This document shows positions 5,984 to 63,399 of a stretch of 64,000 nucleotides of DNA, in pieces. Source of the stretch: Lepidodermella squamata (taxonomy: Eukaryota; Animalia; Gastrotricha); contig JBLDXI010000054.1 of NCBI GenBank assembly GCA_047495785.1, positions 2,542,001 through 2,606,000 on the forward strand, given 5' to 3'. Position 1 is the stretch's first letter; each line of letters opens with the position of its first letter. The notes below the pieces were generated by a model. It ran no database searches, had not been told where the DNA came from, and was given only the letters and a program-made list of their open reading frames with translations. The position numbers and the translations under genes are program-made.

Positions 5984-8273
5984 TTAAAAATTTTGCTCAG
6001 AGGTGCTCAAATTGACTGCTTCGAAAAATTCTGCAGGAATATTTGCCTTCGGCATAGGAACAGCGTCGTAAGGCGGTGTGAATTTCGTGAATTGGAAGTA
6101 GAAGTCTTTGAACAGTGGCGATGTTACAGCAAATGTATACGGACAGTAGACGGGGGGTCCTCGAATTTCCATCTTGAAAACGTGAGTGCAGTTGCCAAAA
6201 AATGTAAGAGTCTCTTGAAACGCAGCCAGCCGCTGTTCGAAATATGGTTTCTGACTCATGTAATGAATCAGGGCCAACTCGTACCGCGACCGCACTGCTC
6301 GCATTCTATCGACATCTTCAAGCTTAGCAAAATCTGAGAGAAAAACATTTCAAAAACACATTGCTACAAAAGAAACAATCAACATTACTTGGATCGAAAG
6401 TAAGAAGTGTGCAGAAAAGGGCAAACTCTTGAAGATCGCCAACGGATGACATCATTTTGTTGCCAGCTTGGCAAAGGAATCGTTCGAGCACAAAATGCCA
6501 CGGGTTGCATTCCGAAACTTTCTGCCATGCCCCGTTTCTGTCCAAAGACATCGAATTCGGAATTTGCCGCTCCATGTCAAAGTCGAGCGAAAATTGCGCG
6601 ATGAGGATCGGAAAAAAGGCGTTGGTAAACACGACCAACCGGTCTTCCATTGTTGTTGTACTGGTACCAGGTAACAGGGTAATGAATTCGCTGATGCAAC
6701 GGATGTAAGTGTCAAGGGCGACGGACCGCTGAGCAGTTAATCCCCCCATAGCGAAACCTCTCGCAGCAGAGTTAGGCTCAATCTTAATCCTGATTTGAGA
6801 TATCGGAGCCAAGCGAGCGACAGCATCAACAGCTTGATCCAGAAGCCACCGAGATGCATCCCTTTCATCATTTCCGATCACATCGTAAATCGGCGCTGAG
6901 GCTTGAAGAGCGTAATTGAGCGATATGTTGGAACTTGAATCAAACGCTATGGTATCGTTACAGAGCGATAGCGTCGTAGACTCTGGTTCTAGCTGGAGTA
7001 GCTCGTCGATATCGTCCAAAGACATTTCATCCTCTTGTAAGGACAACGTTGGTGATAATGACTTTGAGCCATTCCTCTCCAACTTGGTTTCGTTCTAATA
7101 TGCAAAACATAGAAAATTTCAATTTTTGCATTACTGGAGTTAAGGCTCTAGAAAAGTTAGTTCCGAAGGTGTGGTCATTCGGCAAACTTCGGGGAATCTT
7201 ACCATAGCAGGAACCAAGTTTGATACTCCCCCGCCGCTTGATAACGATTCGCTTCCAGCGCCATCTGAAGTCGAATTCCCGGGCAACAGGTGGTTGCGAT
7301 TGCGTCGGAAAACCGGCTCATGAATCACTGAATTTTGCTGTGCTAATTGCGCGACAGTCGCCTCGATTTCAGCCCGCAGTTCTGTTGTCATTCGGCCCAT
7401 AGCCTTCTCACTCATCGACATGCCAGATTCGACACAGCGTTCAAGCCGGCATTTGCGGCAATTCGAACTGGCCGGGCATCTTCCACCCGGCTCTAACGTC
7501 TTGCATTTGTAGCCGAGTCGAAATTTCCCATTCATCGACCGGCGGAAGAAGCCTTTACAGCCCTCACAAGAAACTACGCCGTAGTGAATGCCCGTGCTTG
7601 ATGCACCGCAAATTCTGCACGGAATTTGTGTGAAATCGAACTGAAAAAATTGAAAATAATGAAAATAAAGAAAATTTCCAAAATTTCGAACTCTGTTTAT
7701 CGCAGCAACTGGTTGAGGCGTTGGCGTTACTACCAGCTGTAGAGGCGAAAGGGTCCTACGTCTCCGCATTGGCGTTTTGATGATGCTCTTCGCAGCTTTC
7801 GGTGGACTAACCCCCGTGGACGATGCCGTACTCCCGGGCGAAATCGATGATCCATTGGCAAGGTCGGATCCCATCAAAACCATACGGCAGCGGATGAATT
7901 TGCAGTAACGGCACTCGCTGGCCTTGTACGTGGTAACCTTACTGATATTTTGCGCACCCTCACCGCCACAGGTGCATGCAAAATTATCGCCGGTTTTGAT
8001 ATGCCGGCAATAGAATCTCTAAAATTTCGAATGATTAATTCGCTTAATTTTTTTTAATTTTTTCCTTACCCGGCAAGATTCACAGATTGAGATAATACTC
8101 GGCAGTATGATTCGTTTGCTTTTTAGGGCGTTCTTTCGAACGGCAACTGAGATCATTTTCGCGCAAACTTGGCATTGAGTCGATATTCGCGACGTTAGTG
8201 TTGTTGTTGTTGATGTAGAATCAGCCTCGGCCAGCTCTAAATTCAAGCTGGTCACAAGCCGCGGGTCGGTCAT
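5984..8273 (-). CDS. Two-DBD nuclear receptor NR1 (5 exons; introns 8019-8069, 7641-7691, 7095-7202, 6334-6388)
   Basis: DBD1 CQVC..CESCR|RFYCR..CTC..CRYCKFIRC; DBD2 CRICGASSTGIHYGVVSCEGCKGFFRRS..CRKCRLERC..GM; LBD signature FITLLPG..EDRLVVF, EFALFCTLL, SPLFKDF. Splice junctions keep the frame. Confidence 0.9.
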
Positions 8274-9373
8274 TTTTCCGTAAGCACCGAAACTAAAGCC
8301 AAAAAAATGGTCAGAATAATAATATCCTGAAATTTTGAGAGTGAGCAGGAAAAGGGACTAAATTGCTGGAAGGTTCATTTCACGGTGTGGATATATCGAA
8401 TATTTGAAAAAGCAATTATTGCCTGCCTTGTTTGGCACGCCAGCAAAAAAACTTGCTCGTTTTCCAGCGATGTATAATGTGTTCTAGCGTTTTTTTCACC
8501 GCGATCAATGGCTCAGGTAGCAAGGTGCGTACAAATATTATTATTAGTATGCTTATATGTAGTAGCATATAGCAAATAATGGAGAGAGGCTATACGCACT
8601 CGTCGCGTTTACTTATTGATGCAAAGCCTGCTCCTGTGGCTATTGACTCAGCAGTTTTTTTTTGACCGACATGTGCTGCGCTCTACGAAAAGCCGGCAAA
8701 CAGTGAATCATGAAATTTGGCTGAAACCGCATTACGCATTATTTGATTTGCGCTTTTAAATTAAATAAATATTAAATCAATTTTCGAACAATGTTTAAAA
8801 AAATATGAATTTTTAATAAAATCAAGCCTAAATTGGTTTTATTGAACTTGAAATCGAAAGCGAAAGTGGAAATCTAAAAATCGAAATATCCGAAAGCAAA
8901 ATAGCAAAACGCGTTCATTAATCGTATCTTTTCAAAAAAATAAAAAATTAAACTTCTTGCTTTCAAAGTGACCCTAATTTTTGGGTCATTTCGAGAGTCC
9001 ATTTTCAAGACATAAAAACCGGCAAGAAAATACCAACTTATCAAATTTTTGAAATTCAACGAAAACAAATATCGAAAAAATTCATCGAAGGTCATTCTTT
9101 GAGAAAAACACATCTCTCAAAAATATTCATTATTTTATTCGGAACGAATTTTTCATAATTTTACACAATAAATAGATGTATTCGTTACAATTTTAGCAAT
9201 AATGATTATCACTTTTCATTCAAAAAACAATCAACCTTCATTGTTACCTGGACAGTGTTTTTACAACTTCATCCTAGTGATATTCACAATGTTTTCTTCG
9301 AAAATAATAATATATGACAGCATAAGTTGCGCAAAATAGCAGAAAATAGTGTCGAGCGGTTAATTTTTTTCGA

Positions 9374-11702
9374 TTATTTACAACTGGGTGCCTCTTGCAA
9401 GCTATTGCACGGCACTGGCGGCGTAAGCGTAACAAACTGCAATTGGAAATCTCGGAATAACGGGGATGACATATTCAAGAACATTGTACAATGCGTTGGC
9501 ATCATGCGAATTTCGCACTGAAAAATGCGCGTCGATCCGCGGAAAAAGTCAACAAGTTGCCGCATTTGTTGCATGCGCATATCGCGCTCAGCTTCATCGA
9601 GAACATTTTCGGCTAAATAATGAAACAACGCCGTTTCGTATCGCGACTCCAACGCCGTGATCAGGCTTGGATTGCTGAGGCCGGGGACTTTCGTATTGAA
9701 ACAAAGTAGACCGCAAAATATCGCAAATTCGCGCAAGTTGAATACCGTTGACGTCATTTGATTGCCGGCATCACATAGAAATCGTTCGGTTAACTGGATC
9801 CATGAACTGCATTTTTCAATCATTTGCCACGCGCCGTTTCTATCAAGATTAAAATGATTCGGAATTTGCTTTTCAACATCGAATTGCAAAGATAACTGCG
9901 CGGCAAGAATCGGGAAAAAGCCGTTTGAAAACAAAATAACGCGATCGTTAATCGCCAACTGGTTCATTCCAGGTAGATTGGTGACAAAATCACTGATTGC
10001 TTTAATGTAAACGTCGAAAGCCTGAACGCGTTGCGTTACTATGTCCCATTTTGTGGTGTTAGCATCAGCTCGGATGACGAGATTGGAAATAGGAGCAAGC
10101 CTGGCAGTGGCTTCAGCGGCGCGATCTATCAACCACCACGATGAATCAACATCGCCGTTAGACATGTTGAAGTACAAATTATGAGTAGGGCTGAGGGACC
10201 ACTCCAACGAGTTGACATCCTCTGGCAGCGTTATTTGAGGTGGAATCATCGACATCAGCGTAGTATTCCAGCCTTCTCCGGAAAAACCTAAATTAGAAAA
10301 ATAAAATAATTTCGAAAAAATCCTCCTTAATTTTTTTACCTTCAAAATTATCCGAATAATTAGAATAATTGTCGCCAAAGGGAACAAGAGCCGTTGAGAC
10401 TTGCATTTGCTCGGCCTCATCCGACGAAATGCCGCTGCTTGACGCCGATAACAGCGCCGTTTCCATCGGCAAATCATCGAGCGAAATCAGCGCTAGTTCG
10501 TCGACATCCGGCTCGAGTTTGACCGAAAAGTTGTCGAAAACGCCACTTTCTCGCGCATCAACCATCATGACCTCGTCGCCGTTGATTGTATTATTACTAG
10601 TAGTCGCATCTTCGTCGGATGAGTTGCCGCTTGAGGTCGATGAATCATCGTCTGATTTTTCCAGTGTGGATGACCTAGCGCGTTTATTACCCCGCCGCGT
10701 AATCGGCTGGCTGAGGGCTGATTTTTCCCTCGCTAATTTCGCAATTGTCTCATCGAGTTCCCGGCGTTGTTGACGATTCAGCCGGCCGATTGCGGATTCA
10801 TTCTGCGACATGCCAGCGGCGTAGCAGCGTTTCAGCCGACATTGCCGGCAGTTCGATGATTGCGGGCAGAGTTTAGCCGGTTCTGCATTGGCGGCTGCGT
10901 CTTTTTCGAATTGTTTGCAACGGTATTGCAGCCGGAATGCGCCGCGAATCGATCGTCGAAAAAAGCCTTTACATCCCTCGCATGAGACAACGCCAAAGTG
11001 AATTCCAGAGCCTAAAAAATTAAATTTAAATTAAAAAATTACGTAAAATTGATTTTTAGTTACTTGAACATCCGCAGACTTTGCATGGAATTTTCGAGAA
11101 ATCAAGTCGCGTATTCGACGTGTTCGTAGAACTGCCGACAGGTTCCGCTTTCGGCACCCTGTGATTAGCCGGCTTTATTGTCGATGATGGCGATGATGAC
11201 GAAACGCCGGTCGAAGACGACGACGAAGATCCGCTCAAGTTAGACTGCGGCGTCACCGGTTGCGATGAAGTTGACGTGCTGAGAAGGGCGGATCGAGAGG
11301 TGGTTGTTCGCTTTTCAGTCGCATTGGCCTTGAGAGCGGCCTGGCAACGGTCGAACCGGCAGCTGCGGCACTCGATCTTGTCGAGACTGAATTGCGACGA
11401 GCCACCGCACGAGCAGACCAGCTTTTCACTCGCTTTCACGCAACGGCAATAAAATTTCTGCAAAAATTACATGTGATTTTAGCAACGGACATTTTTTGAC
11501 CGATCGAGCAGACATAATTCGATTTTTTTAATTTTTTTCGAAAAATTTAGAATAAACTTACTCGACAAGCTTCGCAAATTGGCGGGATGGTTGCCATTTT
11601 TCCGGATTTTGTCAGCATTGGAACTTTAATCGGCCTATCGCAGGCCTTGCAAATTCGAAGATCACCCATAGCGGCTAAACTGTCGTTAGCTACGAGGGCC
11701 AT
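9374..11702 (-). CDS. Two-DBD nuclear receptor NR2 (4 exons; introns 11458-11561, 11012-11063, 10288-10339)
   Basis: DBD1 CKAC..CEACR|KFYCR..CSC..CRSCRFDRC; DBD2 CKVCGCSS|SGIHFGVVSCEGCKGFFRRS; LBD FVTNLPGMNQLAINDRVILF, SPLFRDF. Confidence 0.9.
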
Positions 11703-13216
11703 CTTTAGCGGATTAATTTTCTATGAAAAATAAAGCGCCACCTCAAAGTTAATTAGGTGCAAAATAGAAACAGTGAGCACCCGCGACACTTTGCGGCTTT
11801 TATAAACAGCTCAATATGAGATAACGAATGGTTTCAGGGTAAACTAGATAATAAAAAGCCGAGGAACTTGAGATAACACTGCGGCTCTTGTGTCATGCAG
11901 CAGCTAATTCTTCTGGCTGCTGTGGTGGTGGCGCTTTCTCTTCTCGACATGCGTCTGCTGGCTGGCTGGCTATTACACACATACAAACACGTGAAAGCAC
12001 ACAAAAAAGAACCGTTCTTAGTAATAAAATCACACATATTGCAGAGGCCGTTGTAATAAGAGCCGCCGTGTTCCATCAAGTAATTATTGGGATGTAATAA
12101 TGCTATTTGACACTGCCACGCAGACCCACTATCAATAATCGATGACCGTAAATCATGTGATCTACTATAGCTGGACAAATAAAAGACAAAAATATCGAGC
12201 TCAAGTGAGAAGGGTGCTTAATAATTCAGAGGATCAAAAAGACAATATTTGATCTAAAAAAATCCCGCCTATTTTTATCAAATAACGCAGTTCTTTTCAA
12301 CTTGTCTCAAGTTTGAGGCCAACGACCTTGCAATAAATCGCAACAATGATGTGAAAAAAATGAGCTCATTGCGCTGACAAGCACTGAATGAAAGTTGATG
12401 GAACCAGCTATGATTAAGAGGGCACAACTACAAGGTCACGTTTGCAGTTTTATCGCTTGCGATATGGCAGGAAAGAAGTGTGTTATCTCGCAAACCAGTA
12501 ATAATTGAAAAGATAAATTACGCCTAAACCGCGCGCTCGGTATAGATAGAATTTTAACGTTAACATAAAGGTGACGATCAATAGCTTTCTTCTTTTCCTT
12601 CATTAATAAACGCATATAAAGCGAGCGCTATGTAATAGTAAAAGCACTACGCATGTTTATCAGCTGGTTTTTTTTGACCGACTATGCTTTTGCAGACACG
12701 CGTGAATCATAGTAAAATAACACGTGCCATAATCGTGTACTGCGCTGCGCAATTGAAAAAAAAATACGTGAGTGTTATTCAGTTCTTGTCCGTTAGGAGT
12801 AGAACGCATTTTGACGGGATATGGGAGTTCAGCAGATTATTTATAGCTTCACCTAAAATTCTGCTTTTTATTCAACAGGTATTTTGTGGAAAAATATAAT
12901 CAAGTCACGTGAAAGAAATTCGCGTCAATAAAATAACCACATTATTGCTTGATTTGGGTGGTTTTCCAGGTTAATTCGAGGAAATGAACGAGGCAGCGTA
13001 TTTCAACCGGCATAATTTCCAACGCTTCGAATATCTTGTTATAAAAAAATAGGGTTGACATTTTGTTGAAGAATGAAACCTTGTTTATAGTAAAATCACA
13101 TTTAATTAGAAAATCAAAATTTTATCGCGCAAGAGTCCGGATAATTTTTGTAAAAATCCAGCTTAAAATGTGCGAATACAGATGCGCAGTTGACGTGATG
13201 AAAAATAGACGACGAA

Positions 13217-16016
13217 ATGTTGAATCGAATCGCGGCACTTGCCATAAACTTCTTAATAGTAAAGAAATCATCCGCTAACGATCAGTTGAAGACGACAGCG
13301 CATCCCGTAAGCTGCGTTGATCATCTACATTATTTAGATTTCAAGTTTAACCATCAGCTAACAAAATTAACCGTTGAAATATGAATTATCATTTTCCTGA
13401 AATTTCTCACCATGAATCTTGTTTTACAGAAAATTTACGTCGACTACGATTCGTGCGTATTCAGGCCTGAACTGTCGCTGGTCAACCACCCTCAAGATCG
13501 GCTGGCCTATTGGGAATATTACCCTTATCCTGAATTAGCCGAAGCTATAAGGCTGGGCAATGTTTCGATACAACATGAGACTGTAATGGCCGAGAGGATT
13601 AATGAAAAAGAACACGGACAGAAGAGAACTAATCTGTGGAACGTTTCGGTTAAAATTACAAGAATAATTACTCATTTTAATTGCTTTATTTCATTCATTT
13701 TTCTAGCCATTCAACGTTTCGAATTTCTACGTAGAAATTGAGGTCACCCACCTTGCCTACGTTGATAATAACTCAGATCTTTTCGCGTTTTTGGTCGGGA
13801 ATTCAGAATCGATACAACGTCGTAATAATACTCAAAATGAATCCAGCAATGATGGAGGTGTCGATGGACTTAAGTTTGTCGGCCTTATAGCACCATTTTC
13901 GCTATGGCGAAAAATAGCTTCCGTTACCTTGATTGTGGAAACCGGTCAAACAGAAGACGATGTTACGAGAAGCTTCTCTCCTATTATTGAACCCAATAAC
14001 AAATGGCCGAATTTCGAAAAAATTAAGCAGACAACGCGAATCAGGTTCGAAGTAATTGAAGGTGCCACGATAACGGTGAGCTTTGAAATTTGAAAAAACT
14101 ATATTGTGCAAACAAAATTTGACCTTTTTTCCATGTTTTTCCCAAGGTGAAAATGAGATTTTGCCCAACAAAATTCTGATGTTGGGAAATTCGATTATTG
14201 ATTACGATGAATTGACCTGATATCGGCTGTTCAAAGATATAGTTGTTTACATATTTCAGATTTCTCTCTGCGCTAAAAGCCAACCGTGCGATGTCGAAGG
14301 AACACGGACGTTCAATTCGTCTATTACTAGTCTCTTCAATGCCTACAAAATGTTTACGGGCTTCGCGTCTCGCAGCGGCGGGAACAGCGATTTCTTGGCA
14401 TTAAAAAGTCTCCACTTCTACGACTGCAGCCCGTCGATAAGAACGAGAGAAACTACGCAAAAACCTGTTGTAAGATGTAGATCATTTATCGATACATTTT
14501 TTTAATTTTTTTTTTAATTTTCACAGGATGACGTTCTAACTAATAAATCACAAACGACTGCAAGAATAACCACAGAAACTACTTCAAAACCTTCCGTAAT
14601 AATAGGGATATCAATTATCGACGAATATTTTAAAATTTACCCAAATTTTCCTATAGGAATTCACTACGTCGTCGACAACGGCGCATCCCGTGAGCCACTG
14701 CGTTGATAAATATATTTTAATTCAAGTTTAACCATCCGCCAAGAAAACAACCGTTAAAATCGGAACCTTATGTTTCCTGGCGTTCCTTGTCATTATTTTT
14801 ATTTACAGAAAGTATACACCGACTACGATTCGTGCGTATTCAGGCCTGAGCTGTCGCTGGTCAAACACCCTCAAGATCGCCTGGCCTATTGGGACTATTA
14901 CCCCTATCCTAAATTAGCAGAAGCTATCAGACTGGGCAATGGTTCGATCCAACATGAGACTGTAATGGCCGATGGCTTTGACGAAGACGGGCGGAAGGAG
15001 ACTGGACTGTGGAACGTTTCGGTTACAATTAGACAAATAATTTCAAAGTAATTCATTGATTATTTTTCTAGCCATTCAACTTGTCAAAATTCTACGTTGA
15101 CATCGAAGTTGCCAACCTTGCCTACGGTGACAAAGTCTTAGCTAGTTTTGCGTTCATCGTCGGCAATTCAGAATCGATACACCCTCGTAATTTCAATCAG
15201 CTTGAATCCTACCAAGGCGGAGTTGTCGACTTCACAAGGTTTGTCGGCCTCTACGCAGCAATTCGGCCCAGGCAGCAGGACGCTGTCGTTGCCTTAGTGA
15301 TCGAACCACGCGATCAATTTAAGCCTGACACCTTTAAAGCATCGGATGATGCTGCGAGGAGCATGCATCGCATCATTGATCTAAAAAACAGCTGGCCAAC
15401 TTTTGGCCAAAATAAGCAGACCACAAAAGTTAGGTTCGAAGTGATTAACGGTGCTACGATAACGGTATGCTTAACACATATATTTGAAAATGACTAAAAA
15501 TCAGTAAAAAATCAATTTAGCTTTTAAAGCAATTCGTGATTTTTCCGGGGATTTTTGAGAATTTAGATAAATTTATTAGTTTTGGCAATTTTAAAGCGTG
15601 TCTTTGTTAAATTTTTCAGATTTCTTTCTGTGCTAAAAAGCAACCGTGCGATGCAGAAGGGACATGGACGTTCGATTCGTCGATTACTAGTTTCTTTAAC
15701 CCTGTCTACAAAATGTTTATGGGCATTCGATCTTACACCGGCGGGAACAGCGATTTCTTAGCATTGAAAAGCCTCCACTTCTACGACTGCAGCCCGAAAA
15801 ATCCGCCGGCCCCGAGAACGAGAGTAACAACTCCAAAACCTCACGTGAGATTAGGAATGATTTATCGATATATTCTTTTGAAATTTTTTGAAATTCTCAC
15901 AGAAATTCTTTCGCACAACAAAACCTTGGTTTAAATCAAATGGAATGGCCTTAGCATCCTTCTACTCAAAACTCTCGATCGTGTTAGCTTCGTTCAACGT
16001 TTTATTCAACAGTTAA
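13217..16016 (+). CDS. Lectin-like gene A: signal peptide + 2 divergent L-type-lectin-like domains + Thr-rich linker + GPI-signal-like tail
   Basis: Exon 1 13217-13306 (MLNRIAALAINFLIVKKSSA..). Each domain is built from three phase-0 exons (e.g. 13430-13648, 13707-14075, 14260-14469). Last exon 15903-16016 ends SNGMALASFYSKLSIVLASFNVLFNS*. Motif similarity to VIP36/ERGIC-53 (ELSLVKHP..YWDY, GLWNVSPF, FAF, MFMG..SYTGGNSDFL.LKSLHFYD). Gene structure is firm, lectin call moderate. Confidence 0.7.
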
Positions 16017-16193
16017 ATGGCCAACGAGACAAAACTCAGAAAATTTAACCAGGCTGTTAAAGATAGTCAAATAAAATTTGAAAAAAAAATCAAAAATTGT
16101 TATTGCGAAAGTGACCAATTTTTTCTGTAAAAAATCCAGCTTAAAAAATGCGGATGCAAAAGTAGTTTAGGTGATGAAAAAATAGACGGCGAA

Positions 16194-19100
16194 ATGCGCA
16201 AACCGATCATTCTTGCGTTTATCATCAACTTTTTGATAGTAAAGAAATCATCCGCTAACGATCAGGTGACGTCGGCAGAGCATCCCGTAAGCTGCGTTGA
16301 TATCATGTATCTTTTGATTTTAAATTAAACCACCTGCCATCTAAACTAACCGTTGAAATTTTGATTATCATCATTTTTTTGAAATTTCTCTTCTTTTTTG
16401 TTAATTCAGATAGTTTACGCTAACTACGATTCTTGCGTATTCAGGCCTGAGCTGTCGCTGGTCAACCACCCTCAAGATCGGCTGACCTATTGGGAATATT
16501 ACCCTTATCCTAAATTAGCAGAAGCTATAAGACTCGGCAATGTTTCGATACAACATGAGACTGTAATGGCCGAGAGATTCGATGAAGACGGCGACAACGG
16601 GCAGAAGAACAGTGGACTATGGAACGTTTTGGTTAATAAATTGGACCAATAATTACTTATCTATTCACCAATTTCTTTTGTTTAGCAATACAACGTGTCA
16701 AATTTCTACGTTGATATCAAATTTACTCATCTCGCCTACGTTGCTGATACCTCGTCAAGTTTTGCGTTTATTGTCGGCAATTCAGAATCGATACAACGCC
16801 GTAATAGCACTCAACCCGAATCCTACCATATTGTCGACCTCGCAAAGTTTGTCGGCATTTTTGCAGAAATTCTGCCGTCGCAGAAGAACGCTTTTGTTAC
16901 CTTGACTGTGGAAGCAGTTAAATCAAGTGATGATGCGCTCAAGAGCTCATTTCATCTTAACCTCAATAACAATGGGCTGGAATTCGGAAAAAATAAGCAG
17001 ACTTCGCGAGTCAGGGTCGAAGTGATTGAAGGCGCCACAATAACGGTAAGCCTATCAAACCGGTGAAAAAATAACCCATAATTCCAAAAATATTGTTATA
17101 TTTTACCGTTAACAAGTGAAAATTAATAATTCGTCGCGAAAGAAATTCCGATAAATGCTCAGACACAATTTTTGGGGGGAATCTGAGGTGAGGTATCTAG
17201 GTAGATTGCATGGAATCAACCTAAATCGATGAGCCTTTTCACTTGTTAAACGGTCATTTCTATTAATGACTTCGTTAAAATAATAAGCCTTAATTTGGCT
17301 TAATTTGGTATTAAGTTTTTACAATTTTTTCAGATTTCTTTCTGCGCTAAAAAGCAACCGTGCGATGCCGAAGGAACACGGACGTTTAATTCGTCTATTG
17401 CTAGTCTCTTCAATCCTGACCAGAAAATGTTTATGGGCCTTGCGTCTATCAACCGCGAGAGTACTGATTACTTGTCGTTAAAAAGTCTCCGCTTCTACGA
17501 CTGTAAGCCGCAACCTTCCGTAAGATGAGTATAGCAATTATCGGCGAAATTTATTGAAATTTACCCAAATTTTTCTATAGGATTCCTCCCGCTCTACGAC
17601 AACAGCGCTTCCCGTAAGTTCCGTTGATAAATATATTCCATATATTTTAGACAGGCGTCGCGCAAATTAATTTGAATACCGCGCAAATAAAATCAAAAAG
17701 TGTCCCGCAAAATATTAAGGTGCGCGCAAATTAAAAAAAATGGTGACACGTGACGCGCGACACTTAAAATTTAGGCTGCGCGACATTTCGAATTAATTTG
17801 CGCGAAGTTTTGGGGTTCTCTCATTTCAAGTTTCAAGTTATGGTTTTTCACAGAAAGTAAACGTCGACTACGATTCTTGCGTATTCAGGACTGAGCTGTC
17901 GCTTGTCGACCACCCTCAAGATCGGCAGGCCTATTGGAAATATTACCCCTATCGTAAATTAGTCGAAGGTATAAAGCTTGGCGATGTTTCGATACAACAT
18001 GAGACTGTAATGACCGAGAAGTTGGGCGAAGACGGCGGCGAGTTGGAGGAGACTGCACTGTGGAACGTCTCGGTAAAATTAGGCAAATACATAATTAGTA
18101 ATTAATTCCCCTGATTTTTTTAATTATTTTCCAGCCATTCAACCTGTTGAGCTTTTACCTTGAGGTTGAAGTTAGCCACCAGGCCTACGGTGATAAAATC
18201 ATGGCTGGTTTCGCGTTTGTCATCGGCAATTCAGAATCGATAATGGTTAATTCGTTTGGAAATTCGGATCAAAAATACCCCCAAAGAGCTGTCGATTTGA
18301 CGAAATTTGCCGGCATCTTTGCAGTAATCTGGTTAGGGCAGAGGAAAGCTTTCGTTACCTTGATAAACGAACCACCCAAAGAAATTAAAGATGCTGCTAG
18401 AGGCATGCGTCGCATTGATCTCGATAACAACAGTTATTGGTCAAATTTCGGGAAAAATAAGCAGACCTTGCTGGTGCGGTTCGAAGTAATTGAAGGCGCC
18501 AGGATAACGGTATGATTTAAAAATAATTCGTCTGGGTCAATAGAACTAGAAATATTGTTGACCAGCTCGTTATTTTTTCTAATTTTCTTTTTTTCCGAAG
18601 GTTGAATTTTCTGGCTAGAAATATTTTCAAATTTAAGCCCAAGTTATGCGATGTTTTTATTATTATCTTTATATCGAAAATATTTGATCCTATAAAAAAA
18701 ATGGGTCACATTTGTCATTTGTCTATAATTAAATTTTTTAAATATAAATTTAGATTACCTAAATAATAATTTAATTTTTATTTTAATTTTTTAATTTTTA
18801 TAAATTGAAAAAGTATGAATTTTTCAAAAATTTCAGATTTCTCTCTGTGCTAAAAATCAACCTTGCGATGTCGAAGGGACTCTGACATTCAATTCGTCGC
18901 TGGCTAGTCTCTATAACCCTGACCGCAAAATGTTTATGGGCCTGTTATCTCTCGGTAGTAACAGCGATTTTTTGTCGTTAAATAGTCTCCACTTCTACGA
19001 CTGCAGCCCGCCTCCAAAACCGTTGGTAAGATAAATGTGAATTTGAAGTTTACTCGAATTATCCTATAGGATTTCTCTCGCAGCGATGGTAAATAATTAA

Positions 19101-21032: not shown

Positions 21033-21129
21033 ATGGCCAACGAAACATATCACACTAAATTAGCAATTAAAAACAGGCCGTGATTTGAGATATTTTGAAA
21101 TTATTAGACAACATCGAAACTTATATGAT

Positions 21130-25214: not shown

Positions 25215-25323
25215 TCACTTGACGATATAATACAAATTCGAGTAAGTGCCGCCAACACTCGGACCCGGCGTTGCACTTGGCTGCGGTTGTTGCAATTGTT
25301 GAGATTGTTGCTGCTGCTGTTGT

Positions 25324-25356
<33 letters not shown>

Positions 25357-52855: not shown

Positions 52856-54934
52856 TTAGGAAACACTGCTTGCGAGCTGCTTTTTGAAGTCGAGCACAAG
52901 TGGCGAGTGAGATGCAGTCAATTCATTCATTACCGGCATGATTCGAGTATGGTCACGGAACATCGCCCGGAAGATTGCCGAAGCTGTCGGGTAATAGCCG
53001 AGCATGGCATATATTTGCGACAGGCGGTTATCCGCATTTGGCTTGCCTCGAACGACTCTAATGAGAGCATTTTCATATCGCATCCGCAGATCGAGAACTG
53101 CGCTTGGCTGCTTCAAGCCTGCCACATCTGTATAACAAATTGTCCTGAAATCAAGACTGCAAATTGGAAAGGAAGCTCAGCCTACGAACCCCTAATCCTC
53201 TAACTACCCGACCACAGCCTAGTGTCTAGGCTAAAACTCTGTTGATGAAAAGATCGGGAAAAAGCGTGATATCTAACTAGCTCAATCGCTTTAGTCTTTT
53301 TTGCTTTTAGAGTATTTTTCCAATTATTTATTCTATTAAGAAGAGGATACTGGCGATAGGGACATGAAGCTTAGAGAAAATTGCGTACCTGGTTTAAGAC
53401 AAAGCAATGCGCAGAAGAGACCGAATTCGTCGATTTTTGATAGACTTGTCGCCATCATGTTACCAGCTCGTAAAAACAGCGCCTTCAACTCCTCTTGACG
53501 CACCCAATTCACAGACATCTGCTCGTGAAAATCAGGATTGTTCTCATCCAATCCACCAGAGGCCACAATCCGTTTGAATAACTCTGCTGATATATCAGTT
53601 GCAAACGACATGAAATTTATGCGCTGCGTCTTAACATCGAATTCAAGCGAGAACTGGGCAACTAAAACTGGGAAGACTCCCTGCGTGAAAAGAGCCATTT
53701 TGTCTTCCAGCGGGATACTGTTGATTCCAGGCAAGGAAAGGAAAAAGTCGCTAACGCATTTGAGATAAATCTCAGCTGACTCTAGACGTAATCTAATGGC
53801 TTCCTCAAGTGTTGTATGGTCGGTCATGTAGATGCGAACTTCACTGATCGGAGCCAAATATGCTGCTGATTTGGTGACTTCGACTAGCAGATGTTCCATC
53901 TCCATTGGTAGTCCCAATAGTGTGAGAGAGGTCGATGAAGCTGGAGAAACAGAGCTCATTCCCTGATCAATCGAGACGCTGCTAGCAGTTGTTTGAGGAA
54001 TCGACTGATTTGAGCCTTCAAGAGATTCGTGTTGCTGTGGTTCAGCAGTGCGGTCCTTATTCCTACGGAGGGTAAGCGCGTTCAGCAACTTGCCGTCATT
54101 AGCAGCTTTCCGGATTGCCACTTTAGTCTTGATCTTCTTCCTGAGAGGTGCGCCACGAGGTGCAACATCACCCAAGGTCATCCCAGCATCGTGGCATCGC
54201 TGCAAACGGCATTTACGGCAATTTGATTTGGCGGGGCACAGCTCGTCTTTGCCAGACAATCGTTTGCAAAGGTACTGCAGTTTGAAATTCTGCCGAACGG
54301 AACGTCGGAAGAATATTTTGCAACCATCACAAGAAATCACTTCGTAATGAACACCAGAACCTGCAAGAAATATTCACAGGCATCTATATTGAATATGACA
54401 GTGTATAATAAGGTTTACTCTTCAGTTAATCCCTCAATTTTAACAACTCTTTGTTTCCTAGACTTTATTTAAACTGTCGATAATGATCGTATTAAACCCC
54501 AAGCTTGATTCAATTATTACTATTCCAAGTAGCTGAATCTTCCTTGTTAATAAAATAATCAACTCACTGGAACAGCCACAGATAGCACACGGAACTTTAG
54601 AAAAGTTGATCCGGCCAGGAGTTGTTGCAGCTTCGCGGGTTTCATCACCATCGGGAAACTCGTGAAGCTTTCTTTGTTCAACTACCGCCTGACAGCGTTG
54701 GAAGCGACAATAGCGGCAAGATTTAGCATGTTCGGTTTCAGGCTGCCTATCGATGTGGCAGTCTGGACAGCTACCAATGGTTGTGTTCTTGTATCGGCAC
54801 CAAAATTTACGGCAAGCTTCGCAAAGTAAGCAGTTACGCAAAGCCTCTAGCTGCTCGACCGACTGTCGTTTTCGGAAGACGATGGGCGATCGTTTACAGA
54901 CTTGACATTCGGCGTCAAATTTGAATGTAAACAT
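52856..54934 (-). CDS. Two-DBD nuclear receptor NR13 (3 exons)
   Basis: ORFs 54458..54934, 53336..54340 and 52856..53125; DBD2 has HYEVISCDGCKI (G>E relative to paralogs). Confidence 0.9.
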
Positions 54935-55299: not shown

Positions 55300-57685
55300 T
55301 TAGAAAACACTATTCACTAGCTGTCTTTTGAAGTCGAGCACAAGTGGCGAGTGACATGCTGTTATTTCATTCATAATTGGCATGATTCTAGCATGATCAC
55401 GGAACATTGCTCGGAAGATTGCCGAAGCTGTAGGATAGTAGTCGAGCATAGCATAAATCCGCGACAAACGGTAATCGGCATTTGGTTTGCCCCGAGCAAC
55501 CCTGATCAGAGCATTTTCGTATCGCATCCGCAGTTCAAGAACTGTGCCCGGCTGCTTCAAGCCGGCCACATCTATAAAATTAAAGCAGAAATGAAAATTA
55601 TTCATTGAAGAAATCCAGGTATTTCGGCCTAATGGACGACAAAGAATAAAAAACCCCTCCAATATTCGAAACGCAACTGCGAGATGGCCAGTCGATATCT
55701 TTCAGCCCATCCCACCCAATCACAACAGATCATTACTTATCGGAGTAAACGAGTGTTTTTGAACAGCCAGGAAAAGAGCTCGCAAATGGACAGAGTACCA
55801 AGAAAAATCCCAAGCCATATGGAGCCTCTTAAAACATCTCTTATTTTGTGAATTTATACCTGGTTTAAGACACAGCAAAGCGCAGAACAGAGCGAATTCG
55901 TCGATTTTAGATAAGCTTGTTGCCATCATGTTGCCAGCTTGCAGCAACAGCTCACCCAACTGCTCTTGATATTGTCGAAAAACAGCCGTCCTCTCGTAGA
56001 AATCAGGATCATTCTCATTCAACCCAGCAGTTGCCATCAGTTGTTTAAAACGTTCTGTTGATTCGCCCGGGGCCAGCGACATGTAATTAATACGTTGTTC
56101 GTTAACGTCGAATTCAAGCGATATTTGGGCGACTAACACAGGGAAGACGCCCGGAGTGAATAGAGCAATTTTGTCCTCGGGTGGGATTTCGTTGATTCCA
56201 GGCAGGGAAAGAAAAAACTCGCTAACGCATTTGAGATAAATCTCAACAGATTCCATACGTAGCCTGATCGCTTCATCGTAGGACGTATCGCTTGTCATGT
56301 ATATGCAGATGTCACTGATCGGCGCTAAGTATGCCGCTGATTTTGTGACTTGGACTAACAGACTCTCCATCTCCATTGGAAGTCTTAATAATGGGAGAGA
56401 GGTCGATGAAGCAGGTGATAAACAGCTCATCCCATGGTCGATCGAGACGTTACTAGCACTTGTTTGAGGAGCGGACTGGATTGAAACTTCAGGAGATTCG
56501 CGTGTCTCTGGTTCAGCAGTACGGTCCTTATTCCTACGGCGGGTGACCGAGTTAAGCAGCCTACCATCATTAGCAGCCTTCCGAATCGCAACTTTAATTT
56601 CCAGCTTTTTCTTCATGGGAGCGCCGCGAGGAGGAGCGATATCGCCCAAAGTCATTCCTGCTTCCTGACAACGCTTCAATCGACACTTACGGCAATTTGA
56701 TTTGGCAGGGCAAAGCTCGTCTTTGCCTGATAGCCCTTTGCAAATGTATTGAAGTTTGAAATTCTGCCGAACGGAGCGGCGGAAGAAGATTTTGCATCCA
56801 TCACAAGAAACGACACCGTAATGAGCACCAGAACCTATAGTTGACATTACAATTCCAAATAAATTTGATCGCCATTTATAAAAAATTGTTATAATTAAGT
56901 GGGGCTTCTCAAAATGGGGGTCGCAGGGTCTTTTCACTTGGGTCGCCGAGTGAGCTGGGGGTCACGGGGTCCGCCTGATGATTTTCATATAGCTAAAAAT
57001 TACATAAATTTGGTTCATTTTTGGCCTCTTTGGACAAAAAGCTGGCTGAAGAGCTCAAGTCCATGGAGAGTTCAAGAAATTATAGGAGAAACTGAGTAAA
57101 TTGGGTGATATTTTCTAGCTTGGACCTCGGACGTAGAATTTCGGAATGTTTAGCATCTTTTCCTATACTGAAAATCGATAAAAAATGGAAAAATCCCCCT
57201 GGGGTTACCAGCTTGCAAAGAACTTATGAATTTGGGGTCGCCAAGGTGTTGGGAAGCCCTGTGATATAGTTTCGATTTTTGATCAACCCTCTCGCACAAA
57301 GAATATCTCGAAACTCACTTGAACAGCCACAGATAGTACAAGGCACTTTGGAAAAGTCGATTCGGCCAGGAGTATTCGCCGCCTCGCTATTCTCGTCAGT
57401 AAAAGGAAGCTCATGGAACTTTCTCTGCTCAACAACAGCCTGACAGTGTTGAAAGCGACAATAACGGCAAGATTTAGCATGTTCGGTTTCAGGCTGCCTA
57501 TGGCTTTGGTAGTCCGGACAGCTATCAATGGTTGTGTTCTTGTAACGGCACCAAAATTTACGGCAAGCTTCGCAGAGTAAGCAATTTCGCAAAGCTTCTA
57601 GGTGCTCAGCGGATTGCTGCTTTCGCAATAGGATGGGTGATCGCTTACAAACTTGACATTGAGCGTCAAATTTGAAAGGAGCCAT
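55300..57685 (-). CDS. Two-DBD nuclear receptor NR14 (3 exons; first intron enlarged by a repeat)
   Basis: MAPFKFDAQCQVC..; [19 protein letters not shown]; LBD; HSPLVLDF. Confidence 0.9.
56900..57261. mobile_element. Probable hAT-type MITE in intron 1 of NR14
   Basis: Imperfect terminal inverted repeats TGGGGCTTCTCAA ... TTGGGAAGCCCTG, subterminal GGGGTC(G/A)C repeats, degenerate 8-bp flanks (taattaag/tgatatag). The intron is much longer than in most paralogs. Confidence 0.5.
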
Positions 57686-57895: not shown

Positions 57896-60204
57896 TCACG
57901 ATGACGAATCACCAATAAAGCGTGTAGTAAAATCCATCATAAGAGGCGATGCTTCACTAGTGAAAGCAGTAAACTCTCGGGGTAAGATTTCATACGCTTG
58001 GCGGAAAGCGTGCGATAGTAAAGTTGTCGACTGTCTGTAAAAGGCCAACATATTGTAAATTTGTCCTAATTTCGTCTCGCGTCCGTTCAATCTCCGAGAG
58101 TATTGATGCATAATTTCTTCGTGAAAAGACCTCAAGTCTTCAACAGCGTTAACCTCAATGATACCAGTAGCTTCTAAAACAAGATTTCCTAATAAAAACA
58201 AGTGAAAATAGCAAAAACTATCGAACCTGGGTTAATGGCGAGAAGACTACAAAATATCGAGAATTCTTCGATGTTAGAAATCGTATTCGACATCCAATTG
58301 CCAGCAGCTATCAGATATCGCTCAATCACTGCGCTTTCAGGAGCTTTCTCCCGAACAATATCCAACGACTCGCCTGGGTCCATCGAAAACAAATTCGCTG
58401 TTTGAGTGGCCGCATCGAATTGCAGCGAGAGTTGGGCGATTGAAATCGGGAAAAAAGCTTGAGTGAAGAGGGTCACCTTATCTTCCAGGTTGATTCGGCC
58501 GATTCCGGGCAGCGAATTGACAAACTCGCTAACAGCTTTCATGTAAGGCTCGAAAGACTTCATTCGAATTGTGTGCAAATCGTATAGCTCCATACCGCGA
58601 TGGTAAAATACCCGGACGTGGCTGATAGGTGCCAGGTGAGAGGCACTCCAAGCCAATTTCGGCAGGATCGAATCGATTTCAAGTGGCCTTACGTGACCGA
58701 AATCACTGCAATCTGAAACAGGGGTGGTACCTTGAATCTGCTTGATTTGGCTAAGGAGGATCTCAGAAGTTTGAACTTGATTGCCCCATAAAACCGTGAG
58801 ATCGGACGAACTTCCCTGGACCGATGTTGCTGATTGGTTACCAGAGTCCACTGCCTCAGTTACCTGAGGTGGGACTTCAGAATCAGGTGATGATTCTGAT
58901 TTCTTGCGAGGCCTCCGTAGGACCTTTTTCTTCAAGATGGACCCCTCTTGAAGATGCTCCTTTACTTTGAGGGCAAGTTGCATTTTCCTGGTCATTTTGT
59001 TGTGATTGGCCGATTTATTGTCGCCAGCCGACATTCCAGCATCGAAGCAACGCTGTAAGCGGCATTTCCTACAACTTGAATCCTGAGAGCACAACTGCCC
59101 GGTGTTGTTCTTGCAGATGTAGTGGAGCTTGAATGTGCCCATGACAGACCGGCGAAAAAATGTCTTACATCCTTCGCAGGAAATTACGCCATAATTTACA
59201 CCACTGCCTAAAAATGAAAATAAAATCGAAATAAATTCGAATCCACGGTAACTGAGGGATGGAAAAACTGCGGTGACAAATTTCAATCAATTCAATATCT
59301 AACATATTATTTGGGTATTTAACTGGTTAGGGTTAGGTTAGGATTAGAGGCTGGGTCTTCGAATTGGGGGCTTGATTGGAATAACTGAATGAAATAATTT
59401 GGTACAGAATTGAATTATTTTTGGCACTGAATTCAAAAATTTGGTAATGAATTCACCATACCTGGAGGAATTTTTATTAAACAATTAATAAAATCATGAC
59501 TAAGCCGTTGATCAAAGTGATCAGGAGACGATAGACAGCAAAGTTTTTATGGTGATTAATTGAATTTTCCACACAAAAACATAGAATTTTCAAGATTCTG
59601 AAAAATTAATCGAAAATTAATCGAAGCTTATTTTCGAAAAATTAATCGAAATTTTGAAAAAATTTGGCAACAGGCCCTTTTATTAGGACCCTTTTATATT
59701 AGTGTACCAATAAAAAATGCCTCTGGCTGATTTGAAAAAAAATCACGATAAGTTCAATTTTTTCTAAATTTATCACAGATTTATAATTCTTTTTGCAGTT
59801 AACTGATATTGGCCTGGCGATTTTTTAATTATTTAACCTAAATAGATGATGCGAGAAAATTAATTACTTGAGCATTTGCAGATTGTGCATGGAATTTTAC
59901 CAAAATTAAATCTCCTAGGTCTGGAATTATTATTATCATTAGCCGGCGATAGAGCTGGCAGTAAATTTGAGGTTGAAGTCGAGCGCTGTTGCAAGACAGA
60001 TTCGCAGAGCTGAAGTCGGCAAAATCGGCATTTTTTCGCCGCTGATTTCGAACACAGACATCCGTCCAAGCGCTCGGTTTTATGGCGACTATGAAATTTT
60101 CGGCAGGCCTCGCAAATTTGCGGTTTGGCGTCTAAAATTGCCAGCGAATCTTCGGCAGCCATTGACCGCTGGCAAACACCACAGCTAGCCGATTTTCGTT
60201 TCAT
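57896..60204 (-). CDS. Two-DBD nuclear receptor NR15 (3 exons)
   Basis: MKRKSASCGVC..CEACRKFH..CLC..CRFC; DBD2 SGVNYGVISCEGCKTFFRRS; LBD FVNSLPGIGRINLEDKVTLF; SPLMMDF. Confidence 0.88.
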
Positions 60205-61777
60205 TATCACACATATATTTAAAATTCCTGGATTTAGGGTAAAAAATCGGGAGCTAATGATTATTTTACCAGGCAGAGCATCAGTTCTATGTGAAATATA
60301 GAAACACACACGCTTTGTATTAATGATTATTATAGAAATACTACTGCTAGCATTTATAATGATAGTAAAAGCATTCATAATCGATCGCTGCAAATTATTG
60401 ATTTTTTTAGAGGTAATTTTACCTCTTAAGCAGGCGACATATAAGGCCTGAGCTTGCAGACCTGCAAAAGACGCTGTAAATTTATACTATGTGGTTGTAT
60501 TACTACGTTTCTACTACTGGAATAAATGTACTCGGCCGCACACTAATAATATAAATACAATGTGAGCAATGTCAAACGTATAATAATAATAATGTCATGT
60601 ACTTGCTTTTGCTGAGCTTTTTTGTGTGTGTGGTGAGCGCAGCAACTCGTGAATGGGGTCTAGAATTATCTCTCCTAGTTTTTCACGAGCACTGGCTACA
60701 TAATGCAAAACATACATTTTCGCGGTTTTTTTTATCATAATATATGTATGAAAATGTAACGCTTGAATCTATAAAACGATTTCACAATGAAATTCTAAAT
60801 ATTCTCAATCGCTCCCGCTCGCAGACGCTGAGAGAAGCTGTACTTTATAATAGCGGCGAGGCGGTGTAAATTTCTCGTGAAGAGAAAGCAAAATAAGGAG
60901 GTTTAGAATGAAAAAAGAGCATCTAAAACTACCAAAAACTACTTAAAAAATAACTTAGTAATTTAGAGATAAAAAACATGTCGCAAGACCCGGGTTCATT
61001 TTCAAGCTTGAAGACGCACGATAAGACATGCTCGGTTTGAACGAAGAGAACGGCTGCATTTTGAATTTTATTTTGAAAAATTGGTAACGAAAGCGAAGTT
61101 GTACGTAGCGCAAGTAGAATGAGACGTGGCGTATGAAAAGTGACCTTGGAGTTTCTGTTGCGTCATACAATTGCGGCGACTATGCACTACCACAATCGAC
61201 CTTTCTCAAATTCCCATCTAGCTTAAATGAGGGCCCTTTTCACACGGCTTATGTACGGCAGGTCTCACATTTGAACAGGGTAATTTTGGAAACTCGGCTC
61301 TTCGGCTTTGAAGGCGGTGAATAGCTTTGTAACGCCGTACGAAAAGACACAGAGTTTGCTTCATATAATTCCCTGTCTCTTGAGCTTTCGAATGGCTCAA
61401 GTCTCAAGGTGATCGGAGCAATACTTTTTTGAGAAATATTATGCACAAGGGAACTAAATCTCGATTTATCAAAACACTCAAGTCAGGAAAAATCGTATAA
61501 TCATCAAATTTTAGCGATAATTCAGGGCTCACCTTACACACCTTCGCACCAAAAATCAGCGATTTCTGGAAGTGTTTTATCTTTTCAAATTGAATGAAAA
61601 ATTGAATGAAAAAAAAATTTTACTCAAAAAAATGCTATCTTCACCACAATTGCGTGTGGTACAGTGTATTGTCACCTTATACAGATATTTTTCTATACTC
61701 ATCAGCGCAATAATATGGGAAACTTTCATAGAACTCGCAATAATGCTAAGATTGAATGTGAAGGTAGAATGAGACAG

Positions 61778-63399
61778 TCACCCCAAGCTTGGGAGCTGAG
61801 TGACAAATTTAACATTGAAATCGGACATAAGAGGAGAGAACGCAGCTGTTATGTCAATGATATTCGGCAATTTCATGCAATGAGATTGTTGTTTTCTAAA
61901 TAGGCTTGTTGCTGATCGGAAGAAGGCAAGCATTCCATACATCTTAGACAACCATTCATCGCCATTGGCCTTCTTTCTAGCATAACGCATCATAGCGATT
62001 TCGTAGCAGACTCCAAGTTGCTCGAATTGTTCGTCGTATGTCGGTTCGGAAAGATCTATGCAATTTTAAGAATATCGATACTGAAAATTCACTCGAAATA
62101 CTTTTACCTGGCTTCAAACATATCAATCCGCAAAAAAGGCCAAACTCCTCAATAGTCTGCATTGTTGCGGTCATCATCGCACCCGCTTGACGAGATAAGT
62201 CGATTATTTCATCGAAATGGTACGACATCGTTTTCAATACTTGAAGAGTCTCCACGTCAAGATGATCTAATCCGAATACGTTTGGCTCATTCTTCTCCAC
62301 GTTGTAGTACAGTGATAGCTGAGCCATTATTAACGGGAAATATGCCTGTAAGAACAGCCTTATTCGATCCTGGACGGGCAGTAGCAAAACACCGGGTAAA
62401 TTGTTGAAGAAACCAGCCACTGACTTGACATTGATTTCAAAAGCCTGTGCGCACAGCGAAACTCTGCTCTCGAGGCTCATGCCTATTTGGTATCGTATTT
62501 TCGGATACTTGCCGATTGGTGCTAGAAACGCCGTTAGTTCCGCTAAATGACGGACAAGACAACCAGAATTTGCAACAGGTGAGAACAGAAAATCATTCAA
62601 GTCCGTTGGCCCAACTATCTCGACTGCTTTGCGAAAGTCAGTTTTTGATAGCAGTGAAATTTCCATACATTTTGCTTCTACAAGCGGTAAAGGCGAGGCG
62701 GGGTGCGGATCATTGACGAATCTTGCCGGCTTCCTCTTTTGCGGTGGCATCAGAACTGTTCCGTCGTTCAGATTCTTTTTCAGTTTTGAAATGATTTCAA
62801 ATGCATCCCGCTTCCTGGCAGATTCGTAGGATCTCGTCATACCCGCGTCGATGCAGCGCTTGTATCGACATTTTTTGCAAATCGATTTTCGCGAGCAAGG
62901 GCCGATTTCGCCCTCTTTCCTCGAGCACTTGTATTTCTTATGAGATTCACGGCTTGTGGATCTGATAAAGAATAGTTTACAGCCATTGCAAGCTACGGCG
63001 CCGTAGTGGATTCCAGAACCTAGATAAAAGTATACATTGTTTTGTTTGGTATTTCAGCAATATCTTACTAGAACAACCGCATATTGAGCAAGGGATTTTC
63101 GCATAATCTATGCGTTTGCGGCGCAGACTTGGTAGATGGTCGTTGTCATCTGGATAGAGGTTCTCATTCTGGCAACGCTTTGCTACAACAATTTTGCAGA
63201 ATTCCAGTCGACAGAAACGACATTTTCTGTAGCTCGAAGCATCACTGCATTTGCATGTCTCGGGAGGTCCTCTTTTATTGCGGCAGTAAAATTTACGACA
63301 AGCGTCGCATAGGGATGGGTTTTGGCCGCAATCAAAGTCGCCGATGCTTGATTTAGAAGCTAAAGCTGAGCAAACTGAGCAAATTTCGTTCTCACCCAT
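61778..63399 (-). CDS. Two-DBD nuclear receptor NR16 (3 exons)
   Basis: CSVC..CDACRKFY..CKC..CRFC; DBD2 SGIHYGAVACNGCKLFFIRS..CKKCRYKRCIDAGM; LBD FFNNLPGV..QDRIRLF; SPLMSDF. Confidence 0.88.

Follow-up and report, generated by a model that had tools for sequence, protein, structure and literature searches.

What does a long row of co-oriented genes, each seemingly coding for a nuclear receptor (NR) with two DNA-binding domains (DBDs), represent in the genome of the gastrotrich Lepidodermella squamata? The genes in question lie on contig JBLDXI010000054.1 (hereafter C54) of the 121-Mb, 151-contig genome, in a stretch of 64,000 nucleotides (nt) at C54:2,542,001-2,606,000, which was analysed as a whole and is termed the window; coordinates refer to the window unless a contig is named. 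It is highly probable that the window belongs to a very large tandem radiation, specific to this lineage, within the two-DBD nuclear receptor (2DBD-NR, proposed NR7) subfamily, the products of which would act by the steps set out below. A birth-and-death radiation of this kind had been put forward in the original prediction, made from the letters of the window alone, and is supported by the presence of both DBDs on one transcript, by the modelling of the first domain (DBD1), by two sequencing runs that bear out the assembly and by phylogeny.

A six-frame motif scan of the window found paired P-boxes only on the minus strand, in 15-16 places, with CEACR(K) first and CEGCKG or CDGCKI approximately 330-900 nt further downstream. 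Stop-to-stop open frames, combined with an enumeration of frame-keeping GT-AG junctions, resolved these into 16 minus-strand gene loci that span 5984-63399, which are exactly the limits predicted for 16 co-oriented genes. They are named from G1 (63399-61778) to G16 (8273-5984) in descending coordinates, and are as follows, with P-boxes given as DBD1 / second DBD (DBD2), lengths in amino acids (aa), and LBD and HMM standing for ligand-binding domain and hidden Markov model.

61778-63399, minus strand: G1, exons 63399-63069, 63019-62108, 62055-61778; 506 aa; CDACRK / CNGCKL; unique DBD2-restoring junction, HMM hits.
57896-60378, minus strand: G2, exons 60378-59868, 59207-58227, 58173-57896; 589 aa from the first ATG, although the real start may be a later Met directly before DBD1; CEACRK / CEGCKT; intron 1 of 660 nt.
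55300-57685, minus strand: G3, exons 57685-57319, 56834-55860, 55571-55300; 537 aa; CEACRK / CDGCKI.
52856-54934, minus strand: G4, exons 54934-54568, 54360-53389, 53127-52856; 536 aa; CEACRK / CDGCKI.
50609-52333, minus strand: G5, three-exon layout like its siblings; 1-nt deletion near 50991; transcribed, with introns 1 and 2 spliced in run X1.
48416-50170, minus strand: G6, exons 50170-49804, 49749-48778, 48720-48416; 547 aa; CEACRK / CDGCKI.
46496-48202, minus strand: G7, exons 48202-47836, 47777-46821, 46764-46496; 530 aa.
44367-46082, minus strand: G8, exons 46082-45716, 45661-44693, 44635-44367; 534 aa; the reference model.
42397-44098, minus strand: G9, exons 44098-43747, 43694-42720, 42665-42397; 531 aa.
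40023-41871, minus strand: G10, exons 41871-41526, 41309-40341, 40291-40023; 527 aa.
37382-39887, minus strand: G11, DBD2 P-box CYSCKI; LBD split by a transposon; HMM hits.
34526-36204, minus strand: G12, exons 36204-35841, 35788-34850, 34797-34526; 524 aa; DBD1 above the Pfam zf-C4 cut-off.
25215-28799, minus strand: G13, exons 28799-28331, 27867-27387, 27237-26349, 26245-25837, 25621-25215; 884 aa; CEACRK / CEGCKI.
21130-23344, minus strand: G14, exons 23344-23216, 23159-22796, 22742-22119, 22061-21130; 682 aa; CEACRK / CEGCKG; single-exon LBD.
9374-11702, minus strand: G15, exons 11702-11562, 11457-11064, 11011-10340, 10287-9374; 706 aa; CEACRK / CEGCKG.
5984-8273, minus strand: G16, exons 8273-8070, 8018-7692, 7640-7203, 7094-6389, 6333-5984; 674 aa; CESCRR / CEGCKG; zf-C4 66 bits.

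Fourteen of the 16 spliced models are intact (506-884 aa) and all of these contain DBD1, linker, DBD2, hinge and LBD, the layout that had been predicted for every gene; the remaining two (G5 and G11) are broken in the assembly. Most introns are 49-60 nt long; the donors resemble GTAAGT and the acceptors TTTCAG. In 15 genes the first finger of DBD2 (C-x2-C-x13-C-x2-C) is complete only once a conserved phase-1 intron of 49-660 nt has been removed, and a single junction per gene restores the motif (G1-G15). In these genes the DBD1 exon also encodes, at its end, the first Cys pair of DBD2, so that DBD2 is incomplete without that exon. G16 differs in that its DBD2 is not split by an intron, and G14-G16 carry an additional intron in DBD1, directly after CEACR. 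Two peculiarities of single copies were also seen. The C-terminal part of the G6 LBD (48480-48560) holds a seven-codon in-frame tandem duplication, and in G13 (25215-27263) the hinge is very long, containing an acidic stretch of D/E and several poly-Q tracts, and a poly-Q tail follows the LBD, features that are unique to G13 among the copies modelled.

Are the two DBDs joined on one messenger RNA, and is the array real? Only two public runs hold the stretch, and they come from separate studies: X1 (2015) and X2 (2024, DNA). X1 has a depth of 0-6 in the intergenic spacers and shows a 58-nt skip, with CT..AC plus-strand ends, that is exactly intron 1 of G7. Further skips with CT..AC ends occur in G5 at 51910/51966 (55 nt, intron 1) and 50889/50950 (60 nt, intron 2), and a 54-nt skip at intron 1 of G6 is cut 3 nt away from the predicted junction. 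X2 covers the whole stretch and has none of these intron skips; X1 appears to behave as RNA. A 691-nt X1 contig spans 51615-52258 through the spliced G5 junction, bridging the P-box region of DBD1 and DBD2, and so the two share one transcript. Contigs of both runs match separate paralogues at ≥ 99% identity, which argues against a mis-assembled array. One X2 contig links position 52400 to 48434, a backward step of 3967, which could reflect either a copy-number variant that arose when G6 and G5 crossed over unequally or an artefact of the paralogue graph.

DBD2 is recognised by Pfam zf-C4 (PF00105) at 32-66 bits on pieces of open reading frame (ORF) and at 44-73 bits in a genome scan that hit 16/16 window loci. 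Its second finger is derived (C-x7-18-C-x5-C-x2-C), with the sixth Cys displaced from the canonical C-x5-C-x9-C. DBD1 scored 19.9-22.6 bits across zf-C4 profile positions 17-66, and certain copies gave no match. An hhalign comparison of a 21-sequence DBD1 profile with the DBD2 profile gave a probability of 93.6% (E 2e-7), and the DBD1 profile, when searched against all PDB sequences, retrieved almost exclusively NR DBDs, with NR5A2 at the top (E 2.7e-4). The best 50 Foldseek matches to an AlphaFold2 model of DBD1 (predicted local distance difference test, pLDDT, 73) were all NR DBDs. Their E-values are weak (0.25-1) because the domain is short, and the result is consistent with an NR DBD, not proof of one. 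Taken together, these comparisons uphold the description of DBD1 as an NR zinc-finger pair, albeit a derived one. The loop of its first finger, 13 residues in the canonical form, has 18-27 in the window copies, and its second finger opens with C-x-C or a lone Cys; a linker of 27-86 residues separates it from DBD2. In the remodelled fingers (widened loop, shifted Cys) a His in the 'E(V/T)EH' stretch may be a ligand.

The P-box of DBD1 is nearly constant, being CEACRK in 14/16 window genes, CDACRK in G1 and CESCRR in G16, and CEACK|K or CEACR in the distal array (the continuation beyond the window, described below). That of DBD2 is CEGCKG in G14-G16 and in 12/41 array genes and altered in the others; variants in the array include CEGCKG, CDGCKI, CEGCKI, CEGCKT, CNGCKL, CDGCKL, CDGCKS, CDGCKV, CEGCKR, CQGCKS and others. 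The CEACRK/CEGCKG pair that the original prediction had taken as matching the known order is thus found in G14 and G15 but not elsewhere in the window, where G16 has CESCRR/CEGCKG and the other genes have CDGCKI, CEGCKI, CEGCKT, CNGCKL or CYSCKI in DBD2. In the older and distal copies the G-box reads GMS-x5-(I/L/V)GR(H/L/R), which corresponds to the RxGRQ(P/S) that 2DBD-NR group A has five residues past the DBD2 core; the motif is degenerate in the G3-G12 clade.

The single-exon LBDs of G14 and G15 were used for the Pfam test of the LBD, in place of the LBD ORFs of the young clade (G3-G10). G14 scored 39.9 bits against Hormone_recep (PF00104), above the cut-off, and G15 reached 23.0 bits against a cut-off of 23.5; with the zf-C4 hits of DBD2, both Pfam families expected of the array were recovered. 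An AlphaFold2 model of the G14 LBD (pLDDT 83.5) matched the LBDs of TR-beta, LXR-beta, VDR and RAR with a probability of 1.0 and template-modelling (TM) scores of 0.73-0.78, and the LBD atlas features gave 0.97 to NR-LBD clusters. Fourteen LBDs can be aligned over their full length, and the array LBDs finish in a conserved SPL(V/L)xDF motif. A homodimer prediction for the G14 LBD returned a score of 0.00, which counts neither for nor against binding.

How far does the array extend? Pfam zf-C4 hits carry on past the window on the same strand. We scanned 120 kb of flanking DNA with HMMs made from the window gene models, and found 41 co-oriented DBD2+LBD loci over approximately 124 kb (C54:2,549,413-2,671,938), of which the 16 in the window have gene models and the other 25 are HMM hits. 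DBD1 motifs or HMM hits lie upstream of the DBD2s throughout the array. DBD1 occupies a single exon in the first 26 genes of the array. Distal array genes have an upstream first-finger exon (C-x2-C...CEAC(K/R)), and most of them a second-finger exon after the intron (KF(Y/F)SR...C-x-C...C-x2-C-R-x3-C). In six basal array copies the first loop of DBD1 keeps the canonical 13 residues (x13) and CEACK|K is the classical CEACKK. Two inverted copies lie approximately 30 kb upstream of the array, and genome-wide profile searches found further loci on C54 (approximately 2.01-2.04 Mb) and on contigs C23, C24, C10 and C42. The genome total is at least 53 (41 in the array, 2 inverted and 10 elsewhere), and 9/10 of those elsewhere have a detectable DBD1. 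The predicted figure of 16 genes in 57 kb therefore holds for the window but falls short as the size of the array. One of the inverted copies (L012, C54:2,514,238-2,516,061, plus strand) groups as sister to G5 in the tree described below (Shimodaira-Hasegawa-like approximate likelihood ratio test, SH-aLRT, 97); with a DBD1 P-box altered to CEPCRK and a DBD2 damaged at its beginning, it may be a dispersed pseudogene.

From what kind of receptor did the family arise? A gene on contig C17 of the same genome encodes a canonical 2DBD protein, with CEACKK/CEGCKG P-boxes and a SHIGRHT G-box; the first finger of each DBD has the canonical spacing, and the linker is 22 residues long. Its named homologues are the spiralian 2DBD proteins of Owenia (45%) and Crassostrea (39%), and the G-box of the older array copies resembles both its own and the SRIGRQP of these two. 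A maximum likelihood tree was built from DBD2+LBD of 49 family members, the C17 gene, known 2DBD-NRs and six single-DBD outgroup receptors (five NR1-type and one nematode nhr; HNF4 was not included). All 49 family members form one clade (SH-aLRT 98), which adjoins the C17 gene within the known 2DBD-NR clade (SH-aLRT 99), to the exclusion of five of the six outgroups. Within the family the distal array genes are basal and G3-G10 of the window are the most derived. The closest relatives outside the genome are on metagenome contigs in ENA. An exhaustive search of 1.84 billion protein representatives with the LBD profile gave only 17 hits at E ≤ 1e-10. The best of them are metagenome relatives; lower in the ranking, six of the proteins P0042-P0059 are canonical CEACKK/CEGCKG 2DBD proteins. 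One metagenome relative has an intron at the identical position after CEACR and a second family member adjacent to it on the contig, so the family and its tandem habit are older than this species; from its sequence, this relative is likely the counterpart of G14/G15. The array genes descend from a canonical 2DBD-NRA-type ancestor through successive tandem duplications, and a copy of the ancestral type persists elsewhere in the genome.

Pairs within G3-G10 have a synonymous divergence (dS) of 0.5-1.8 and a protein identity of 63-78%, and all of them have a ratio of nonsynonymous to synonymous divergence (dN/dS) within 0.12-0.28. Among the domains the ratio is lowest in DBD2 (0.079), followed by DBD1 (0.135), the LBD (0.216), and the linker and hinge (0.24 each). 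These values indicate that the copies are old and that constraint extends to DBD1 as well. The original prediction had divided the window into old and young copies; its clades agree with ours (its NR7-14 are G10-G3), but the 'young' clade is not recent. All domains are under purifying selection, and individual copies die by frameshift or transposon insertion. In G5, a 1-nt deletion near 50991 shifts the frame ahead of the LBD helix 'EFALFC' in the assembly. In one X1 contig an additional base behind 50991 restores the frame, whilst X2 has the assembly sequence, and the frameshift is thus an allele of the assembled strain. In G11 the LBD is interrupted by the following element.

37540-38403, strand not assigned: non-autonomous DNA transposon of 864 bp inside G11, with 207-nt terminal inverted repeats that are 97% complementary and a TA target duplication.

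Deletion of the 864-bp element and one TA restores the G11 reading '...SKVYAMLALFP...'. At least 24 full-length copies are present elsewhere in the genome, on many contigs and at 88-96% identity, from which it follows that the transposon was active fairly recently. Its terminal inverted repeats are unusually long.

The genes are expressed and under selection, and they encode two NR-type zinc modules and an NR LBD. Each polypeptide is predicted to run from a derived DBD1 with a near-invariant CEAC[R/K]K, through a linker, to a zf-C4 DBD2, a hinge and a twelve-helix NR LBD. We infer that such proteins act as transcription factors on bipartite DNA sites, where the contact made by DBD1 would be constant and that made by DBD2 specific to each gene. 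The near-invariant recognition helix of DBD1, together with the diverse P-boxes of DBD2, suggests that one half-site is a shared anchor and the other is particular to each gene. Dimers would probably form through the LBD, by analogy with the Schistosoma 2DBD-NR-alpha, and the diversified LBDs might respond to many small molecules or partners; the idea of small-molecule sensing is borrowed from other expanded NR families. A bolder proposal is that this is a second explosive NR repertoire, built on a two-DBD scaffold independently of the nematode HNF4 radiation, with a constant DBD1 anchor combined with variable DBD2 P-boxes and LBDs to yield dozens of receptors, each having its own bipartite site and chemical cue, and that the remodelled fingers are a new functional variant of the DBD fold. 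We hold this only tentatively and consider it somewhat improbable.

Several observations weigh against a radiation of functional 2DBD-NRs. The Pfam score of DBD1 is only at the cut-off, and the second finger of DBD1 in the young clade is short of one Cys and may coordinate zinc differently or not at all. The LBD ORFs of the young clade gave no match to PF00104 on their own, and a word-based search with one of them found no homologue at E ≤ 0.001, a null that reflects the sensitivity and length window of that search, not absence. The sixth outgroup of the tree, a long-branch nematode nhr, falls inside the 2DBD clade, and the tree itself comes from a quick search of concatenated HMM-matched pieces with SH-aLRT support only; given this and the few outgroups, support for placement among the 2DBD-NRs is moderate. 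The transcript evidence consists of assembled contigs from one small run inferred to be RNA and covers G5-G7. The remodelling of DBD1 lends itself to another interpretation, in which the domain no longer binds DNA and has become a degenerate zinc module for protein contacts or autoinhibition, the proteins being one-DBD receptors with an accessory domain. The widened first loop (13 to 18-27 residues in window copies), the C-x-C or single Cys of the second finger, the Pfam scores of just 19.9-22.6 bits with no match in certain copies and the moderate pLDDT of 73 would all fit such a module. However, conservation of DBD1 among 21 paralogues is highest in the recognition-helix region CEAC(R/K)KF(Y/W)xR, with 12 invariant columns, the dN/dS of DBD1 (0.135) is below that of the LBD, the aligned part fits NR DBDs from the P-box through to the end, and the basal array copies retain the x13 loop and CEACK|K. 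We regard an accessory DBD1 as unlikely.

It is also conceivable that unequal crossing-over has produced mostly functionless copies, which would be transcribed pseudogenes in decay. Two of the 16 window genes are indeed broken in the assembly, DBD2 is only partial in at least one distal locus, and the X2 contig joining 52400 to 48434 hints at copy-number variation or a graph artefact. Against this, 14/16 frames are open across 506-884 codons despite a dS of 0.5-1.8, dN/dS is 0.12-0.28 per pair, the splice sites are conserved, G5-G7 are transcribed and spliced and an intact G5 allele is present, which together leave general decay very improbable. There remains the view that the two-DBD appearance is an artefact, either of a separate small zinc-finger gene lying upstream of a one-DBD receptor or of duplication in the assembly. 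DBD1 does have its own exon, and one metagenome relative was split into two products by gene callers. Yet the first C-x2-C of DBD2 is on the DBD1 exon, a transcript contig spans the junction, and two runs from two studies carry distinct paralogues. Fusion of adjacent genes and a mis-assembled array are contradicted by these observations and were rejected; we give this view almost no credence. The reading of the window as part of a tandem radiation of functional 2DBD-NRs is preferred.

How does the array compare with known systems? Receptors of group 2DBD-NRA (proposed NR7A) are known from Schistosoma mansoni (2DBD-NR alpha/beta/gamma), Owenia fusiformis and Crassostrea, with published counts of 1-6 per species (Wu et al. 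2007, PMC1810520; Wu & LoVerde 2023, PMC10497141). Most described 2DBD-NRs have C-x2-C-x13-C-x2-C / C-x5-C-x9-C-x2-C in both DBDs with 17-22 residues between them, and Sm2DBD-alpha forms an LBD-mediated homodimer without RXR (PMC1810520; PMC10497141). The P-P module of CEACKK in DBD1 and CEGCKG in DBD2 is typical of group A and is not a requirement of the 2023 nomenclature (PMC10497141). Each array polypeptide likewise has two tandem NR-type DBDs and one LBD, the defining feature of a 2DBD-NR (NR7). The older copies share with 2DBD-NRA a CEGCKG followed by FFRR and a GR-containing G-box past a 5-residue pre-Grip, the LBD signature is of equal type, and the tree places the family within the group. 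Unlike 2DBD-NRA, there are 41 genes in a single array and at least 53 in the genome, as against 1-6 per species, and the window copies depart from the typical Cys spacing and 17-22-residue linker in their first loop of 18-27 residues, C-x-C or single Cys in DBD1, displaced Cys in DBD2, linker of 27-86 residues and many DBD2 P-boxes, whereas six basal array copies keep x13. Nematode 2DBD-NRC comprises seven genes in Aphelenchus avenae and four in Caenorhabditis remanei; it is reported to lie outside the spiralian/deuterostome 2DBD group and to have an RDRRGP G-box, and the A. avenae proteins to be without activation function 2 (PMC10497141). It resembles the array in having multiple divergent two-DBD receptors per genome with variable P-boxes, but the xxGRH-type G-box of the old copies, the SPL(V/L)xDF end and the grouping with 2DBD-NRA set the array apart from it, as judged by its published description. 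The highest published 2DBD-NR counts that we found were seven (Aphelenchus avenae) and six (bdelloid rotifers), and the literature searched contained no report of a tandem expansion of 2DBD-NRs. The array is thus a greatly expanded, structurally derived form of a known 2DBD-NR class.

The supplementary nuclear receptors (supnrs) of Caenorhabditis derive from HNF4 (NR2A) and have a single DBD (Robinson-Rechavi et al. 2005, as cited in PMC7827873). As in the array, their radiation was explosive, lineage-specific and confined to one subfamily, and it is largely tandem, with diversified P-boxes and LBDs and short introns; unlike them, the array genes have two DBDs, and their DBD2+LBD groups with 2DBD-NRs (in a tree without HNF4). 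The Caenorhabditis nhr expansion is the best analogy for the possible use of such a repertoire. The array is a second example, beside the nematode supnrs, of a chemoreceptor-like expansion in a transcription-factor family, and it suggests that divergent members may be missing from the NR inventories published for small invertebrates. 2DBD-NRs are little studied; 1-7 genes per species have been described, and their DNA targets and ligands are not reported in the literature covered. More than fifty expressed and selected paralogues amount to a natural mutagenesis series for both DBDs, the linker and the LBD. The recognition helix of DBD1 is held constant in this series and the DBD2 P-box, D-box and LBD are free to vary, so that the way in which two DBDs on one chain read DNA becomes directly testable.

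The zf-C4 genome scan also gave 438 first-look candidates, and all 150 of those scored (150/150) exceeded the Pfam cut-off. Among them are further clusters of short DBDs encoded in one exon, which recur at identical scores on contig pairs (C25/C26, C105/C15, C49/C26, C28/C33, C19, C24). The full NR complement of the genome seems very large, and certain regions may occur twice.

Three other features of the window do not belong to the receptor genes.

2265-4716, plus strand: flanking gene with Pfam ANF_receptor (periplasmic-type ligand-binding, E 6e-8), unrelated to the array and marking its lower edge.
13000-21000, plus strand: second tandem family between G15 and G14, with five or six units of 1.25-1.9 kb at 65-94% identity.
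33060-33326: isolated, hairpin-like inverted repeat in the gene-free gap between G13 and G12.

Each unit of the second tandem family contains two plus-strand ORFs with the motifs '...YVDYDSCVFRPELSLVNHPQDRLAYWEYYPYP...' and '...FVGLYAA...RFEVI(E/N)GATITV'; four of its ORFs were tested against Pfam, with zero matches. The inverted repeat has 93-nt arms that are 98% complementary and an 81-nt loop.

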